DNA from: Guillardia theta CCMP2712
Taxonomy: Eukaryota > Protista > Cryptophyta
Reading direction: 5' to 3'
DNA length: 64,000 bases
Assembly: GCF_000315625.1 (NCBI RefSeq)
Contig: NW_005434671.1
Span: 62,001 to 126,000, forward strand
The position numbers and the translations under genes were made by a program. The notes beneath the pieces were generated by a model, which saw only the letters and a program-made list of their open reading frames with translations, did not search any database and was not told the origin of the DNA. Positions 2,121 to 9,081 of this stretch are shown piece after piece. The stretch's first letter is position 1, and the number at the start of each line of letters is the position of its first letter.

Positions 2121-3451
2121 TCAGTCGAACATTCTCAATAGAATCTTCGCGGATCCCACAACCTGCGAGGACGTATGCCTTCGCAACGCTCCTCGTACAA
2201 GTTCTAAAGCTCCACAATCGATTATCCTCGAGCGATTATCGGCACATCCTCTTGCCAGACTCCACAAGCCTCCACATCCGTGTGCTTGGATTCCGGCCTT
2301 CAACGGATGATTCTTCATCGCAACAACAATGCTTTCTATTCCATTCTCATTTGCAATCTTTCCCTGAATGACTTCGTTTTCAAAGGCGAGATATCCAAGT
2401 GCCCCACAGCACTGTTCTTGAATTGCAGCACAGCCAGGGAATTGGTTCATGGCCTTAATTATGATATCGATCCCTCCCAGTTTCAATATTTCATCTTGGT
2501 TCTGATTGTTGAAAGCTGACAAAAACCATAATGCTCCACATGCCTGCTCCAAAATAAATTCGTTTGAACTGAAGTTCTGCATGGATGTTATCAAAACACA
2601 TATTCCATCTTGCTCAGAAATCATTGTTTTCATGGAAGAGTTCAAAGAGAAAATTCTCAGTGCTGCACAACCTTGTTCCTGCACCTTGACAGAGCCTTCA
2701 TGCATCCTCATCCCATCAAGAACTGTCTGGACACACTCCGGGTACCTTGATATCATTGTTCGATGATGACAACTGGCAGCAAGCCATCCCAACACGCAAT
2801 ATGCATTTGTTTGTACAACTCCAGAGCACACATTCTCACTCATGACCCTCAGGAAGTTTTGGAAGGATTTCTCTGACAAAGGCCTTGATATGCAAGTGCG
2901 ATCAACCTCAAGTCCTGTTGGACCACGCCATCCACCTTCAGCAGCGATTGATAGATTGAACAGGAAAGGGGAAATCTGCTTGGATTTGGTAATTGTTATG
3001 TGAAGCTTGGCTCCGCTAAATCTTGTGAAGTCCACCTTTTGAAGGTACGAATCTGAGATTTTCTTTGACAATTTGATGTTAAGCTGCACTGAAGAATGTT
3101 TTGAGGTCAGAACAACTTTCATATTTGATCTTATTGATTTTGAAATCTGCCCAAACGCTGTGACTTTCGATGAAATTCTCTGATAGTGGATTACCTGCAT
3201 TGCCATCAATATTTTTCCAGTAGGCCAGATCAATTCAAGCAATCCGGGAATTGCCAACACTTTTTCACATATCGATAACTCATTGCTTGTCTTGGTCTGC
3301 ACATTTGAATTCTTTCCTGACGCAAGGAAGTCAAAGAATGATCGCAAACACTAGGCATTTTCTTCATACCTTGTTTTTTTGTGTTCTGCTCGCCTCGTGA
3401 GCACTTGAATGTCTTAAGTTCAGGCGAGCCGAAGCTGTTTGGCTTTTTCAA
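2121..3451 (-). CDS. Armadillo-repeat protein, possibly with an F-box-like segment; upstream exons may extend to about 4224
   Basis: Repeats VQEQGCAALRIFS, ILEQACGALWFLS, IQEQCCGALGYLA and IQAHGCGGLWSLA at about 43-aa spacing. VLAIPGLLELIW resembles an F-box start. Confidence 0.85.
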
Positions 3452-4328
3452 ACATGTATCAGAATTCCTCGAGACGATTTTTGCTTTCTTCTGAAAATGA
3501 TTGATCAGTTATCGTGAACGTTTTCGGCCACAAAGAATACCTTTGTGATATGGTTTGGGGAATCGTTTTGCACATTTGTAATTGACTTGGAACACAGTCG
3601 TTTGTTTGTTGACTTGAGTCCGAAGGTCTACAATCATGCATAATCACATGGACGTAGGTGGATATGTCAACTCCGAAGACATGTTGCTTACCTCCTGTTG
3701 ATCTTGATTTTCATCGTTCTCAAGTCTTTCTTCCGTCGTCGATTGACATTTTGAAACCCTCTTCTTCTGAGTCTTTGATCTAGTGCATTGATACACTGGC
3801 GATCTCATCTGACAAATCATCAGTTTTGAATGACAGAAAACGATTTCGACTGCGAAAAACAATCACCCCTTCTGCTAGTCTGTTCTTGAAGCTATCATTA
3901 TTATTCCGCCACTAGCCCTCGGACTGATACATGCTGTACTCCTGTCATCTTTCTACAAACTAAATCACGAATACAACGAGCTTGTAGCTGCTCATCACGT
4001 GAAGGTGCGGCGGGCGGGAGCGCGCGTGATCGCGGCATACATGTATACATCAAGTTCCCGCCTTTCTTGAGTTTGCCTGCTGTCAATGTTTTTTTCCCTG
4101 ATGGGTTTGCAGAACCCAACCGAGCGCGCCTCAGAGTAATGAGCGAGCGGGCGCAATGCTTGAGCGACAGGTCTACTGGGTGGCGATGAACAAGACGATG
4201 AGAGGAGAAGAGACGGGTTGACATAGTTGTGAGTCTTGAACATGTTACGATCGATTTGATCGCTTTGAGTTCGTGCCGCAAGCAGCATACGAGCAGCGCA
4301 GATGTTGCCATTATTGGAGCGGTCAAGA

Positions 4329-6916
4329 ATGATGTGCAACCCAGCTTACAAACACCGGAATACTTTTGTTGCGTTTGTGCAGTTCTTCCTTGTTTGCTGC
4401 TGTTTTCTACCGCAATGCAATTCGTTTACAAATCCCTCTGTTTGGCTAACGAGATCAGCCATCGAAACTTCTCGCTCGATCACTTCATACTACTGTAAAC
4501 CGCGACATCTTTACGCGAGACCGAGACAGAGACAAACCACCTCATGCAGGCTGGTCAGCGAAAGCGAAGATCATATGATCGGAGAGCAATCTGAAGAGCG
4601 CAAACTCATATGGAGGCAAATAGCAAAGGGCTGGAAGGACACTGGAGACCAGTCAAACTCAAAAGGAGTCAGAGTTATGATCTCCCTGCTTCCGAGAATT
4701 GCCATGCTGCCTAAACTCCAACAGAGTCAGCTATACATGCTCGTGTTCGAGAAATTGAACATGTACGCAAGAAGTAGGCATTACTCTGAGGCAGCACATA
4801 GCCTTTCTCTTTGTGTCTTCTTCCATTTGACTGAAAGCAATCATCAAACGCCAAACCAATGCACAGTCTGGATGGTCCATTGCCTTTTCTCTCCTGCAAT
4901 TTCTCAGTCATTCTCTTCGAAGGCAGTCTCAGAACTTTTCTCCGATTTGTGAGCCAGAAAACTTGAAGATTGTTCTCGTGACTTACTGTCAGGATGAGAA
5001 GAACATTAAGAAAGAGTGAGACAAGGATACAGGAAGAGAAGATGAGAATGATTCACGATATGATACACTCAGGTCTTCTAAAGTCAATAGAACCATATCT
5101 GTTCGCTTGAGCTTGTCTTCCAGATGATCAGTTCTTGAGTGCACTAAAATACCTTCACTTACTGCGAGCCTCGAGTGAGTTTTGATATTTCTCGCGAAGA
5201 AGTAAGATGTTGGAATCAGATATCAAGCATGATGTTAAGACTTTCAATGCTATCAGCTCAAGCATCTTGGAAGCTTTCAAGCAATCTTCTCCTGCCGACC
5301 CCCTTACAGTCGCTTCCCAAATCTTTCTGGTCTACAGCTACATGACAGCAGCTGAACAACAGGTAAATGAACTTGTGAATTCATTCCTGGTGTTGCACAT
5401 TTCAAACTTGTTTTTCAGCCAGACGATGTGACATGGCACCACCTTCTTGTGGCATGCAGGTAAAACTAGTGGAAGTGACTGGCAGCTTTAATGACTCTGT
5501 CTACAGATTGATGGGTGGTGAAAACTTGTCCGCAACGGAGACTATCAAATACTTCTTGAAACAATATCGAAAACAAGGTTCGATGATAGAAGTTGTATGT
5601 TTATTCAGGGGGTCATGGTTCTTTTCGATCACAGGAATTAGAGATAGAGCTCGTTGTGTACAATCTTTCGACATCACATCATTCAAGTCATTGTATGAAG
5701 CTCTCAGTCCAAGCAAGGAACAAGTCAAAAGACAGGCTCGTCCTCGCATCATCTGTTTGCATACCCTTACTGGACATTGCAGGGCAAACTTTACGATTAC
5801 ATCAAGAAATTTGTCAGGAAAGTTTACGGCACTTCGGCGTTTTGTGCTCCTTTCGGATCTTCGGTCAATGGGCTGGTCAGCTGCTGCTTTTGGGTGCATT
5901 TTCTCTCAACCCTTGTCACCATCAGGCAACGTCAGGAAGTGACGTTGACCTTCTACTCTGGTTCCGTCAGACTCCCGAAAGAAGAGAAGAAGCCGTCAAG
6001 AACTTTCGAAAACTTTTCTTCTCTCTCAAGAAAAGGTTTATCTAAGTTTTTTGTGGCCAGGGATTGAGCGATGCTGATAGCCCAGGCATCCAAGCGCAGC
6101 CACTTTTCCATGCTCGTACTCCCATCATCAAGCTCAACACCTCGGATGGTGTGCAGGCAGACATTGCCCTTCAGGTTCCAGCCATTGCCATGTCTATCAG
6201 GTCAAGCGATTAGCTCGGCTTCTTCTGACTGCCATCCCTCCTGGTAGTTGACAGAGGATTTGAGCCCTGTCGAAGATGCCGTTCTGCTCATCAAGCGAAG
6301 CTGCCAGATCGACAAGCGGTTTCGTCCTCTTGCTCTGCTGATTAAGGCAAGACTGCAGCTCACAAAGAAAGACGAGTGACCCGTGATCGTCTTGTAGACT
6401 TGGGCCAAGCAGAGGAGAATCAACGACGCGTCCAAAGGAACGCTTTCTTCCCATGGATACATCGCGCTTCTCTTGCAGCTCTGCCAGCAGTCAGAGCCGA
6501 GCATCCTTCCTCGCACCGGTGATTGAGGAAAGTCTGTGAGACACAGTGACCAGACAGGCAGAGAAAATCCTCGACGAAAATTTCTTCTGGGTTTCCAAGA
6601 ACAAATCCTCTCTGTTGCAGCTTTTCCTCCTCTTTTTGTCAGACATTTCATCCTCCATGCATCGACCCCCCCTCAACGCAAATCCTGGTGTCCTCCTACT
6701 CGCGCAAGATCCGCTTGACCCTTCCAACAACATAGCCAAGACAATCAACCCACATGGATTGAAGAGAATGCAGTTCGAGGTGATTCATCCCCTACTTTGC
6801 CACTGTTCCTCTTCATATCACTGAACTTTCTACCGAAGGTTGACCGGGCAGTGGAGCTTCTTCGTTACGACGCCATTGATATTCTTCTCTTTGAGAATCG
6901 AATCTCAAAATTTTAG
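4329..6916 (+). CDS. Non-canonical poly(A) polymerase / terminal nucleotidyltransferase (Cid1/Trf4 family) with N-terminal PPR-like motifs and a bipartite leader
   Basis: Catalytic-domain motifs PFGSSVNGL..GSDVD, HARTPIIK, ADIAL, TWAKQRRINDASKGTLSSHGY and AQDPLDPSNNIA. PPR-like IKHDVKTFNAI and PDDVTWHHLLVAC. Hydrophobic N-terminus ending CNS-F. Joining the 5' exons to the catalytic exons is inferred. Confidence 0.75.
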
Positions 6917-6994
6917 CAACGCGAACTCCCCAAAAACGAGTTTCCATAGTGACAGCAGCTAAAATTCTCTCTCTGGTGTGATTTCTAGGATGAT

Positions 6995-9081
6995 TCAGGG
7001 CCCTGATTCGTTCTCTGCCCTGATGTTAAGCGTTGATAGCCAAGTGGATAGGAAAGAGACGTCAGCTTCCCACACCTCTCGAGACTTCTCCTCCTCCTCG
7101 TCCCACTCTTCAACTAGATGCATCAGCGCTCCTGGATATATGATGAGCACTCAACTATTGTTGCCACTGCAGGGGCAGACTGAGAATATCGGGAGTTTTC
7201 GGTGCAGGAGCAAACTGGGAGAAAGTGCAGGGAGGAAGAGGAGGAGGAGGAGGAGCAGGAGAAGGAGGAGGAGGAGGAGGAGGAGGAGGAGGAGGAGGAA
7301 AACTTCACCGAAGTAGTGATGGCCAAGAAGGCTTGCAAGGTAAAGCATGCACATGTTGAGACCCGCGAGACCCGTCGAGGGATGAGAAGGAGACGAGGGA
7401 TGGAACTCAAGGACATGCAGCCCAGGTCTGGCACTCAGCATGTTGACCATGCCAGCTCCTGCTCGCTGCTATCACTGCCATGAGACAACGGGAAGCAGCG
7501 AACCGTGCGGGCCCACAATGGCAGAGGCACAGGAGAGGATTGAGAGGAGAACGACGGGATGCAGCCCAGCGTCTGAATCGAAGACGAAGAGCTGAAAGCC
7601 TCGAGCCTCTACCGCTGAAAGAATCGTTTCTTCCGATCGCCTGCGAGGCTTTGCTGTGAGCGAGAGCGGAAGAAACGACAAGAGGAGGTGAGAGTGGTTG
7701 GTGTGAAAGGTGAGGCAAGATGGCAATGGAGAGACCTTGATAGTCGCCGCGTTCTCCCGCTCCTCCGCACCAACACAACCAGCGGAGTTTGAGGATGAAG
7801 ACAGGAAGTGAGATTGTTATCCTTGTGACAGACATCTAGACAAGTCTGCAGAGACTCTCCACCCATCTCCAGATCCACATGGTCAAATGACATTGACCGG
7901 AACCTTCGGAAGAATTCGTCTGTAGCATAGGAAAGGAACGAAGAAAGTAAGTGCGAGCGAGCAAGACGAACGTATGAAAGGAGCAAAGGAGGGAGGGAGG
8001 GAGGGAGGGAGGGAAGGAAGGCAGGAGGGAGGGAGGGGGGGAAGGGAGGGAAGGAAAGGTCCTTCACCTCTCAAGGAGAGCACGAGAGGAGGAGACGCTA
8101 TTGCACATCGAGTCGGAGACACGAAGTAAGTCTGCGAGTGTACTCGGAGGGGGCCAGAGCAGAGTCGATGAGGAAGAACGCCGAAAGCTACAGCAAGGCG
8201 TCACTGGAGCAGTAGGGCAGGTCAACACCTGATAGATACTCCTCGACCATCGACCTCTCGGCACTGTGAGGAGTGTCGGACGACAGGGGGACATGCAGGA
8301 GGAGGTCAGAATCTCCCAGCAGCTCTCGTGCTATCATGATCTTGGGCAGGCATTCAGCCACGAAGTGAAAGATGGTGTGTCCCCATGGCTGGCAAGGAAT
8401 CCGTCAGGCGGGAGAGCAAGAGGGAGCGACTGACTTGAGACAGCACGAGCACGCGAGCATGCCAGGTCAGACCCTCCCAACGCTCCTCGTCCACCAGGTC
8501 GCCGATCAGATCAGGTTCCCTTAGACGATGGCAAACTCCATGCTCTTCTGGACTCAACACGACGCGCCCTTGCGACGCTATGCTGCCATGGCGCGTGACG
8601 ACAGCATACCCCTTGAGCACCCAGAGGGACGGCTCCTGCCAGCTCTTCAGCCTTCCTTCCAGCATGTCAGCGCTGTTGTCTCACCTGCGTTGGAACATGC
8701 GGGAGGAGGGAGGAAGAGTTCGGGCAGGCAGAACCGAGCTCCTCGTACCACCAGAGCTCTGCTTCCTGGCGAGGAAGACGTAGGAGCTCGCAGAGACCTT
8801 CCTGCAAGCACAGTGACGTGTCGTGCTATCAGGAGAGACACGCTCACATGCAGATGTACCCTCGAGGGAGAGGAGGAGGAGGAAAAGGAAGGAAGGTTGA
8901 GGGTTGAGATGCACGAGACATCGATGCTCGTCCCTTCTACCCTCCGTTGTATCTTCGCAGCGAAGCTGGCATGGCTCCAGTTCCTCTCGTAGTGAGATGG
9001 TAGGTTGGCCTCTTGCGCCTTCACTGCCGCCGCTAGCAAGAGACACAACAAGTTCGCTAGCCCACACGACCTCTGCGACAT
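6995..9081 (-). CDS. Glycosyltransferase family 61 (DUF563-type) with signal peptide
   Basis: PWGHTIFHFVAECLPK, IVGPHGAGMVNMLSARPGLHVLEF and NMCMLYLASLLG after splicing; N-terminal LLCLLLAAAVKA. Confidence 0.8.

Follow-up and report, generated by a model that had tools for sequence, protein, structure and literature searches.

Can an enzyme of the kind that adds nucleotides to organellar RNAs be joined, in a single polypeptide, to an RNA-binding module of its own and to a leader for a complex plastid? This question is raised by one gene in a 64,000-nucleotide stretch of DNA from the cryptophyte Guillardia theta CCMP2712 (assembly GCF_000315625.1, contig NW_005434671.1, positions 62,001 to 126,000), the whole of which is called the window here. 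The gene is nuclear and lies at window positions 4329-6916 on the forward strand, as do all of its features given below. An earlier note, made from the letters alone, had described it as a putative fusion of a plastid-targeted, pentatricopeptide repeat (PPR)-like part with a non-canonical poly(A) polymerase. Our own reading, in which we place moderate confidence and which is drawn from sequence comparison, is that the gene encodes a lineage-restricted RNA 3'-end nucleotidyltransferase, made in the nucleus-encoded way and probably imported into the plastid stroma.

Gene structure and transcripts

The gene consists of 14 exons and 13 introns, with 639 codons followed by a TAG stop. Beyond its first 620 bases the interval holds no long open reading frame, the frame being interrupted by introns. 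The exon model was built from splice sites and reading frames, with junctions adjusted to the transcript-derived protein P0003. The introns are 43-73 nt long, and two of the 13 are of the GC-AG type. P0003 and a second protein, P0004, are public Guillardia theta sequences derived from transcripts (UniRef A0A6U6CFH1 and A0A6U6CFG8; MMETSP) that match the window letter for letter. Model residues 1-400 (exons 1-8) are 100% identical in both; the exon 9/10 junction can be read in their out-of-frame tails, and the last residue of P0003 also fits the exon 10/11 junction, for which 6247/6248 is the only acceptor. Because these proteins span exons 1-8 as well as downstream junctions, a single RNA bears leader, helical region and catalytic exons alike, and 4329-6916 is one gene with one transcript.

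A single transcript had been assumed in the earlier note, which named separate 5' and 3' transcripts as an outcome that would overturn it; that objection falls away, as both P0003 and P0004 extend from the leader to within the catalytic domain. The proposed gene limits were also right, and the ATG at 4329 is conserved in a related contig (see below). All the sequence elements that had been listed are present, but coding is not continuous, being broken by 13 short introns. Two other accounts of the locus were discarded: separate 5' and 3' genes, since the transcripts span both parts and no intron exceeds 73 nt, and a pseudogene, which is ruled out by the ratio of non-synonymous to synonymous substitution rates (dN/dS).

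As for the two GC-AG introns, the first (5736-5782) follows exon 7 (5635-5735), where P0003 reads ...KEQVKRQGKLYDY...; the GC donor is therefore required, and the transcript protein proves it. The second (6347-6397) follows exon 11 (6248-6346), and its donor rests on conservation in the related contig and on the junction ...LLIK/TWAKQ... (the slash marking the splice point), which agrees with motifs of G. theta paralogs. Both GC donors are kept in the related contig.

Relatives and selection

Two relatives were available for comparison. The first, L003, is a 4950-nt metagenome contig in ENA (ERZ930064), reached through its protein P0001, with a whole-locus identity of 92.9%. The second, P0002, is a 595-aa transcript protein of Hanusia phi (EukProt), partly unspliced and colinear with the model through the leader, the N-terminal domain (N-domain; 52% identity) and the enzyme. 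Database searches took single exons and the public proteins P0001-P0004 as queries, and the joined 639-codon model served in local translation, substitution counts and dN/dS and in local HMM, hhalign and phmmer comparisons. The order of parts is thus the same in Hanusia, which bears out the fusion proposed in the earlier note. On this comparison the fusion is conserved across two genera and so far restricted to one lineage, Guillardia and its sister genus Hanusia. An exhaustive search with exon 1 (4329-4948; residues 1-207, seen in P0003 and P0004) matched P0001 (89% identity) and P0002 (52%) only. In scans of the G. theta assembly, which covered 87.1 Mb on 669 contigs, the N-domain was found to be single-copy, and the closest paralog of the palm domain shared 33% identity with it.

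The gene is well preserved in L003. The start ATG at 4329 is conserved while an upstream ATG at 4302 is not, the splice-site pairs are kept at 13 of 13 introns, and within the gene only two indels occur, both intronic: one of 2 nt at 5411-5412 (before exon 5) and one of 1 nt at 6528 (before exon 13). Differences amount to 5.3, 2.2 and 9.5% at the first, second and third codon positions and to 9.6% in introns. Against L003, dN/dS falls from 0.39 in the leader to 0.23 in the N-domain and 0.077 in the enzyme half; the enzyme is under strong purifying selection.

Two further observations concern the relatives themselves. Positions 1-4843 of L003 align with window positions 4169-9000 at 92.9% DNA identity through gene, introns and flanks, and L003 apparently stems from a Guillardia relative, close but distinct, in the environmental sample. 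In P0002, several stretches resembling retained introns occur at residues ~195-345 and 493-560, and nothing corresponds to exon 5 or to the beginning of exon 6, so that Hanusia may skip or lack one PPR-like unit.

Nucleotidyltransferase domain

To judge by its alignments, the C-terminal half is an intact Cid1/MTPAP-like non-canonical nucleotidyltransferase. The catalytic set is complete: exon 8 (5783-5875), read from P0003, carries the hG[GS] motif as FGSS (5852-5863); exon 9 (5926-6035), placed by frame and by homology to Hanusia and aligned to mtPAP and URT1, carries Asp406-Val-Asp408 (5941-5949); and exon 10 (6081-6174), with a 3' site that follows from the P0003 tail, carries Asp464 (6160-6162). 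The identical motifs of Hanusia align with mtPAP and URT1. FGSS equates to the PFGSS of mtPAP, and Asp464, within V-Q-A-D-I-A-L, aligns with F-Q-C-D-L-S of mtPAP and with the paralogs. The Pol-beta catalytic set (GS, DVD and a third D) that had been seen by eye was in this way confirmed as intact, by alignment to chicken mtPAP through the Hanusia ortholog.

P0002 matches the Pfam family MTPAP-like_central (PF22600) with 58.1 bits (E 1.4e-15; gathering cut-off 27). Single G. theta exons, exon 8 among them, match the same family weakly (12.6-13.8 bits, below the cut-off), because the palm domain is split over five exons. Exon-by-exon searches of Pfam and PDB, with exons of 14-73 codons, were nearly blank, and a genome scan with PF03828 and PF22600, which recovered at least 13 other transferase loci, missed the present one with its short exons. 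No single exon matched PF03828, whereas the PAP-associated region aligns locally with paralogs that carry this family. Among solved structures, those nearest to the Hanusia ortholog are chicken mtPAP (E 1e-4) and URT1, followed by TUT4/7, Trf4 and Cid1; the match to Trf4 (3nyb) is weak (E 0.11) and stands behind mtPAP and URT1.

The C-terminal half also aligns with two G. theta paralogs (65-80 bits) through the nucleotide-binding helix region WAK..RIND..GTLSS and the nucleotide-recognition loop. The former includes exon 12 (6398-6518), which is present in P0002 and aligned to the paralogs; the latter (6702-6740) lies in exon 13 (6562-6779), which has a sole in-frame acceptor. Exon 14 (6839-6916, with the stop at 6914-6916) carries on the alignment in frame to the C-terminus of the paralogs, and its splice sites are kept in L003. 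The recognition loop aligns with one paralog, L001, which in turn aligns with TUT4, TUT7 and URT1. In this ungapped D-P-x-x-x-x-[H/N] register, Asn597 (6726-6728) occupies the position of the uridine-selecting His of TUT4, TUT7 and URT1. The His expected in the recognition loop of a Cid1-type, uridine-specific terminal uridylyltransferase is thus replaced by Asn, a substitution that the earlier note had picked out correctly. On the strength of this one missing His, an adenylyl preference is probable.

Helical N-terminal domain and PPR-like block

The region between the leader and the enzyme can be divided in two. Its first part (4584-5128, residues 86-235) takes in the end of exon 1, exon 2 (4993-5072) and the start of exon 3 (5124-5174), with introns at 4949-4992 and 5073-5123 between them. 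According to the secondary structure of an AlphaFold model of residues 1-400, made from a 3-row alignment, this N-terminal region is all helix, with a predicted local distance difference test score (pLDDT) of 50-77 for residues 89-170 only. Residues 86-235 belong to no Pfam family and gave no significant PPR signal; weak language-model leads point from them to organellar PPR-type proteins.

The second part is the PPR-like block (5129-5648, residues 236-340), which extends over exons 3-7, including exon 4 (5220-5362), exon 5 (5419-5459) and exon 6 (5507-5577). The junctions of exons 2, 3, 4 and 5 were taken directly from P0003, and the 3' splice site of exon 6 was set from the same protein. By profile comparison the block comprises ~2.5-3 helix-turn-helix units that are 40-45 residues long and contain loop insertions, the canonical period being 35, and it ends a few residues before the enzyme, so that what is recognisable in sequence as a PPR-like block directly precedes the enzyme.

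A profile made up of 39 canonical PPR_2 segments of G. theta supports this assignment. When used with hmmsearch on the N-domain, it scored 16.7 bits, a value reached by none of 500 shuffled sequences. In hhalign, residues 236-262 and 299-337 matched the PPR profile with probabilities of 95.6% and 93.4%, and residues 254-311 matched the whole profile with a probability of 90.4% and a score of 35.4. The two PPR-like spots suggested earlier by eye, 5207-5270 and 5419-5457, correspond to the places in exons 4 and 5 that were chosen by both the G. theta PPR_2 hidden Markov model and hhalign, except that 5207-5219 is intron. The check with PPR models that had been proposed gave a divided outcome: the models of Pfam were blank, and the profile made from the PPR motifs of G. 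theta itself matched beyond shuffles.

That division leaves room for another explanation, in which the helical region would serve as a general scaffold or in protein interaction and its PPR resemblance would reflect convergent helical-hairpin composition. The blank Pfam models, the low-confidence fold and the unit length of 40-45 rather than 35 residues would fit this view, as would the language-model features, which point to PPR clusters with a value (0.87; 172 shared features) below the level called reliable and hence are a lead only. Composition, however, accounts poorly for the hhalign score of 35.4, since 150 shuffles averaged 10.4 (standard deviation 1.9) and reached 22.1 at most, and scores of 12.1 and 11.9 were obtained for the reversed sequence and for the enzyme half. 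In addition, the profile match takes in helix junctions of the form P-D-x-x-T-[FW]-x-x-[LI], which are diagnostic, and similar loop insertions are found in some canonical PPRs of G. theta. We therefore regard a mere scaffold as unlikely and retain the PPR-like assignment.

The locus was not among the 70 PPR_2 matches found in the genome. Separately, window 5297-5639 (residues 270-337) gave a weak match to the Pfam family DUF7238 (E 4e-4, 20.9 bits, under the cut-off of 27), and no other match to DUF7238 was found in the G. theta genome.

Leader and predicted plastid targeting

Residues 1-32 (4329-4424) form a signal-peptide-like leader, judged by rule, with a hydrophobic core (maximum 11-residue Kyte-Doolittle mean 2.58) and the ending C-N-S. 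Small residues are found at -3 and -1 before Phe33, as C-N-S in G. theta and C-D-C in Hanusia. Phe33 itself (4425-4427) begins a transit-peptide-like stretch (4425-4583); among the 50 residues after it, Ser/Thr make up 28%, Arg/Lys 16% and Asp/Glu 8%, the net charge is +4, and acidic residues are few early on. The +1 Phe is invariant in the three taxa (G. theta, L003 and Hanusia), all of which have the same leader layout, and it is kept even though no other part of the protein evolves as fast as the leader (dN/dS 0.39). The hydrophobic leader ending in C-N-S, the +1 Phe and the Ser/Thr/Arg-rich stretch that were described in the earlier note are accordingly all present. An aromatic residue at +1 is what sets stromal pre-sequences apart from periplastid ones in algae with red complex plastids (PMC12136025). 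The leader carries the cryptophyte stromal bipartite signature, which by rule predicts a location in the plastid stroma.

The same enzyme might instead act elsewhere, either in the periplastid compartment, on nucleomorph transcripts, or along the ER/secretory route (ER, endoplasmic reticulum). The cleavage site was derived from the -3/-1 rule alone, true cleavage may not put Phe at +1, and the +1 residue is the main difference between periplastid and stromal leaders (PMC12136025). Such a location is nevertheless improbable in our view, given that all three taxa keep a small-x-small pattern with Phe after it in spite of the fast evolution of the leader, and that the stretch after Phe33 is Ser/Thr-rich and net positive. 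The stroma remains our predicted destination.

Proposed function

If these parts act together, the signal peptide would take the protein into the ER lumen around the complex plastid, and the Phe-starting transit-peptide-like stretch would serve its passage across the inner membranes. The mature protein, of ~550 residues, would then consist of a helical N-domain, the last ~105 residues of which form 2.5-3 degenerate PPR-like hairpins, abutting the predicted enzyme part, a Cid1/MTPAP-type palm with a PAP-associated domain and all three catalytic carboxylates. The short PPR-like module may hold single-stranded RNA near the active site, as a built-in accessory rather than a long sequence reader, while the enzyme would add untemplated nucleotides to the 3' ends of plastid RNAs. 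These nucleotides are probably A or A-rich, because the uridine-selecting His is lacking, and the tailing would serve decay or maturation. In trypanosomes, according to work of 2011 attributed to Aphasizheva and listed among the references of PMC11732105, PPR factors reportedly stimulate the mitochondrial tailing enzymes.

Several observations pull in the other direction. No homologue beyond Guillardia and Hanusia was found by the exhaustive search with exon 1 or by word and region searches with P0002. We know of no report of RNA tails in cryptophyte plastids. The AlphaFold model of residues 1-400 has a mean pLDDT of 42.5, a poor confidence, so that it provides no evidence of fold. The Pfam PPR models PF01535, PF13041, PF13812, PF12854 and PF17177 did not match the exons, P0003:10-405 or P0003:90-345 at E up to 10. 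The PPR signal is also absent from P0002 as assembled, because an intron is kept inside the block and the equivalent of exons 5/6 is missing. Finally, the two public G. theta transcript proteins (494 and 517 aa) read through intron 8, shift frame and stop early, before the DVD motif in frame, which would make them truncated and inactive.

A stronger version of the proposal was put forward in the earlier note, namely that the PPR-like module reads a defined sequence and that the protein, as a self-contained system, tails only selected plastid transcripts. It draws on the position of the PPR-like block immediately N-terminal of the catalytic domain and on the role of PPR proteins as sequence-specific RNA binders, which direct tailing in trypanosome mitochondria. 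Each PPR unit reads one base, however, and only ~2.5-3 degenerate units with long loop insertions, on which the Pfam models fail, can be detected here; transcript-specific recognition is unsupported because three degenerate units are too few. One unit is, moreover, missing from the Hanusia transcript, and the dN/dS of the N-domain (0.23) is three times that of the enzyme. Recognition and tailing of specific plastid RNAs thus goes beyond the evidence, the more so as no PPR unit was detected in the Hanusia transcript as assembled, and we consider selective tailing of this kind quite unlikely. Improbable as well is the notion of this protein as the plastid's RNA 3'-tailing enzyme with its own PPR specificity module, a putative single-chain equivalent of KPAP1-KPAF or MTPAP-LRPPRC. 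The more modest reading, of a nucleotidyltransferase with a built-in accessory, is the one carried forward here.

Intron 8 and transcript forms

Both public G. theta transcript proteins keep intron 8 (5876-5925, 50 nt). Were it usually retained, the gene might mainly yield a truncated, non-catalytic product made up of the leader and the helical/PPR-like domain, or be regulated by unproductive splicing. Both G. theta proteins end before DVD in frame, as this account would have it, and several introns are kept in the Hanusia transcript as well. On the other hand, P0002 reads GLATAGSDVD across the intron 8 junction, with the intron absent, and pre-mRNA is common in assembled transcriptomes. Downstream of intron 8, the spliced frame shows 19 synonymous against 5 non-synonymous differences to L003 (dN/dS 0.075, residues 401-639), and none of the 271 second codon positions in exons 8-14 has changed. 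Because of these figures, the spliced frame is the frame that evolution sees, and a mainly truncated product is very unlikely. As to the retention itself, it may represent pre-mRNA in the assembly or regulated unproductive splicing.

Neighbouring sequence

Upstream, an open frame of 408 aa (2121-3347, reverse strand) lies head-to-head with the gene and by eye resembles armadillo/HEAT-type repeats. Just downstream of the gene, 7150-7300 is a (GAG)n, Glu- and Arg-rich low-complexity tract; within the base-by-base alignment of 4169-7300, most of the indels that separate the window from L003 fall in this tract.

Significance and comparison with known systems

The RNA-tailing enzymes of plastids derived from red algae are poorly known. 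In the green lineage, tailing has been ascribed to PNPase and bacterial-type transferases, and mitochondrial enzymes of the Cid1 family rely on PPR partners that are separate proteins. In a literature search that was not exhaustive, no published description was found of a fusion between PPR and nucleotidyltransferase parts, or of such an enzyme in cryptophyte plastids. If our reading is right, the gene would be a Rosetta-stone fusion joining a Cid1/mtPAP-type enzyme and a PPR-like module, and would offer the cryptophyte plastid its first concrete candidate for an activity of this kind. Should the module also confer specificity, it would represent Cid1-type, PPR-guided tailing of selected transcripts in a complex plastid of the red lineage, and could serve as a model in the search for tailing enzymes yet to be identified in other such plastids. 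The weight of these statements is limited by the occurrence of the fusion in Guillardia and Hanusia only, and everything beyond the sequence is prediction.

Among known systems, several algal nucleotidyltransferases (NTRs) have been predicted to be organelle-targeted (PMC5727444). The PNPase and PAP-type NTRs of the green lineage (Chlamydomonas and Arabidopsis) are likewise candidates for organellar RNA tailing, but the green-lineage NTRs discussed there carry no PPR module and belong to a primary green plastid or a mitochondrion. No orthology between them and the G. theta protein was detected in the homologue searches with P0002. Cid1, TUT4, TUT7 and URT1 have in common with the G. theta enzyme the fold family, the catalytic triad and the loop layout D-P-x-x-x-x-[H]-N. 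They differ from it by having His in place of Asn and an aromatic Tyr/Phe in place of His after L-S-S, and they are cytosolic and have neither leader nor PPR block.

The trypanosome system of KPAP1/RET1 with KPAF1/2 likewise combines a Cid1-family tailing enzyme with PPR proteins on the 3' ends of organellar mRNAs. In that case, however, the components are separate polypeptides with long PPR arrays and act in the mitochondrion, and no close sequence relationship to the G. theta protein was found.

MTPAP (chicken 5a2v, human 3pq1) offers the best match of the palm among solved structures and shares with the G. theta enzyme the Pfam family MTPAP-like_central. In its organelle it tails RNA together with a separate PPR protein, LRPPRC, and its N-domain is RNP-like and not made of helical repeats. 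The similarity is remote (25 bits), and MTPAP is mitochondrial, whereas the G. theta protein is predicted to be plastid-located. In their architecture, PRORP (PPR with an NYN nuclease) and other PPR-enzyme fusions also combine a short PPR array with an RNA-processing catalytic domain and are organelle-targeted; the catalytic domain of PRORP is a nuclease, while that of the G. theta fusion is, by its sequence, a nucleotidyltransferase.

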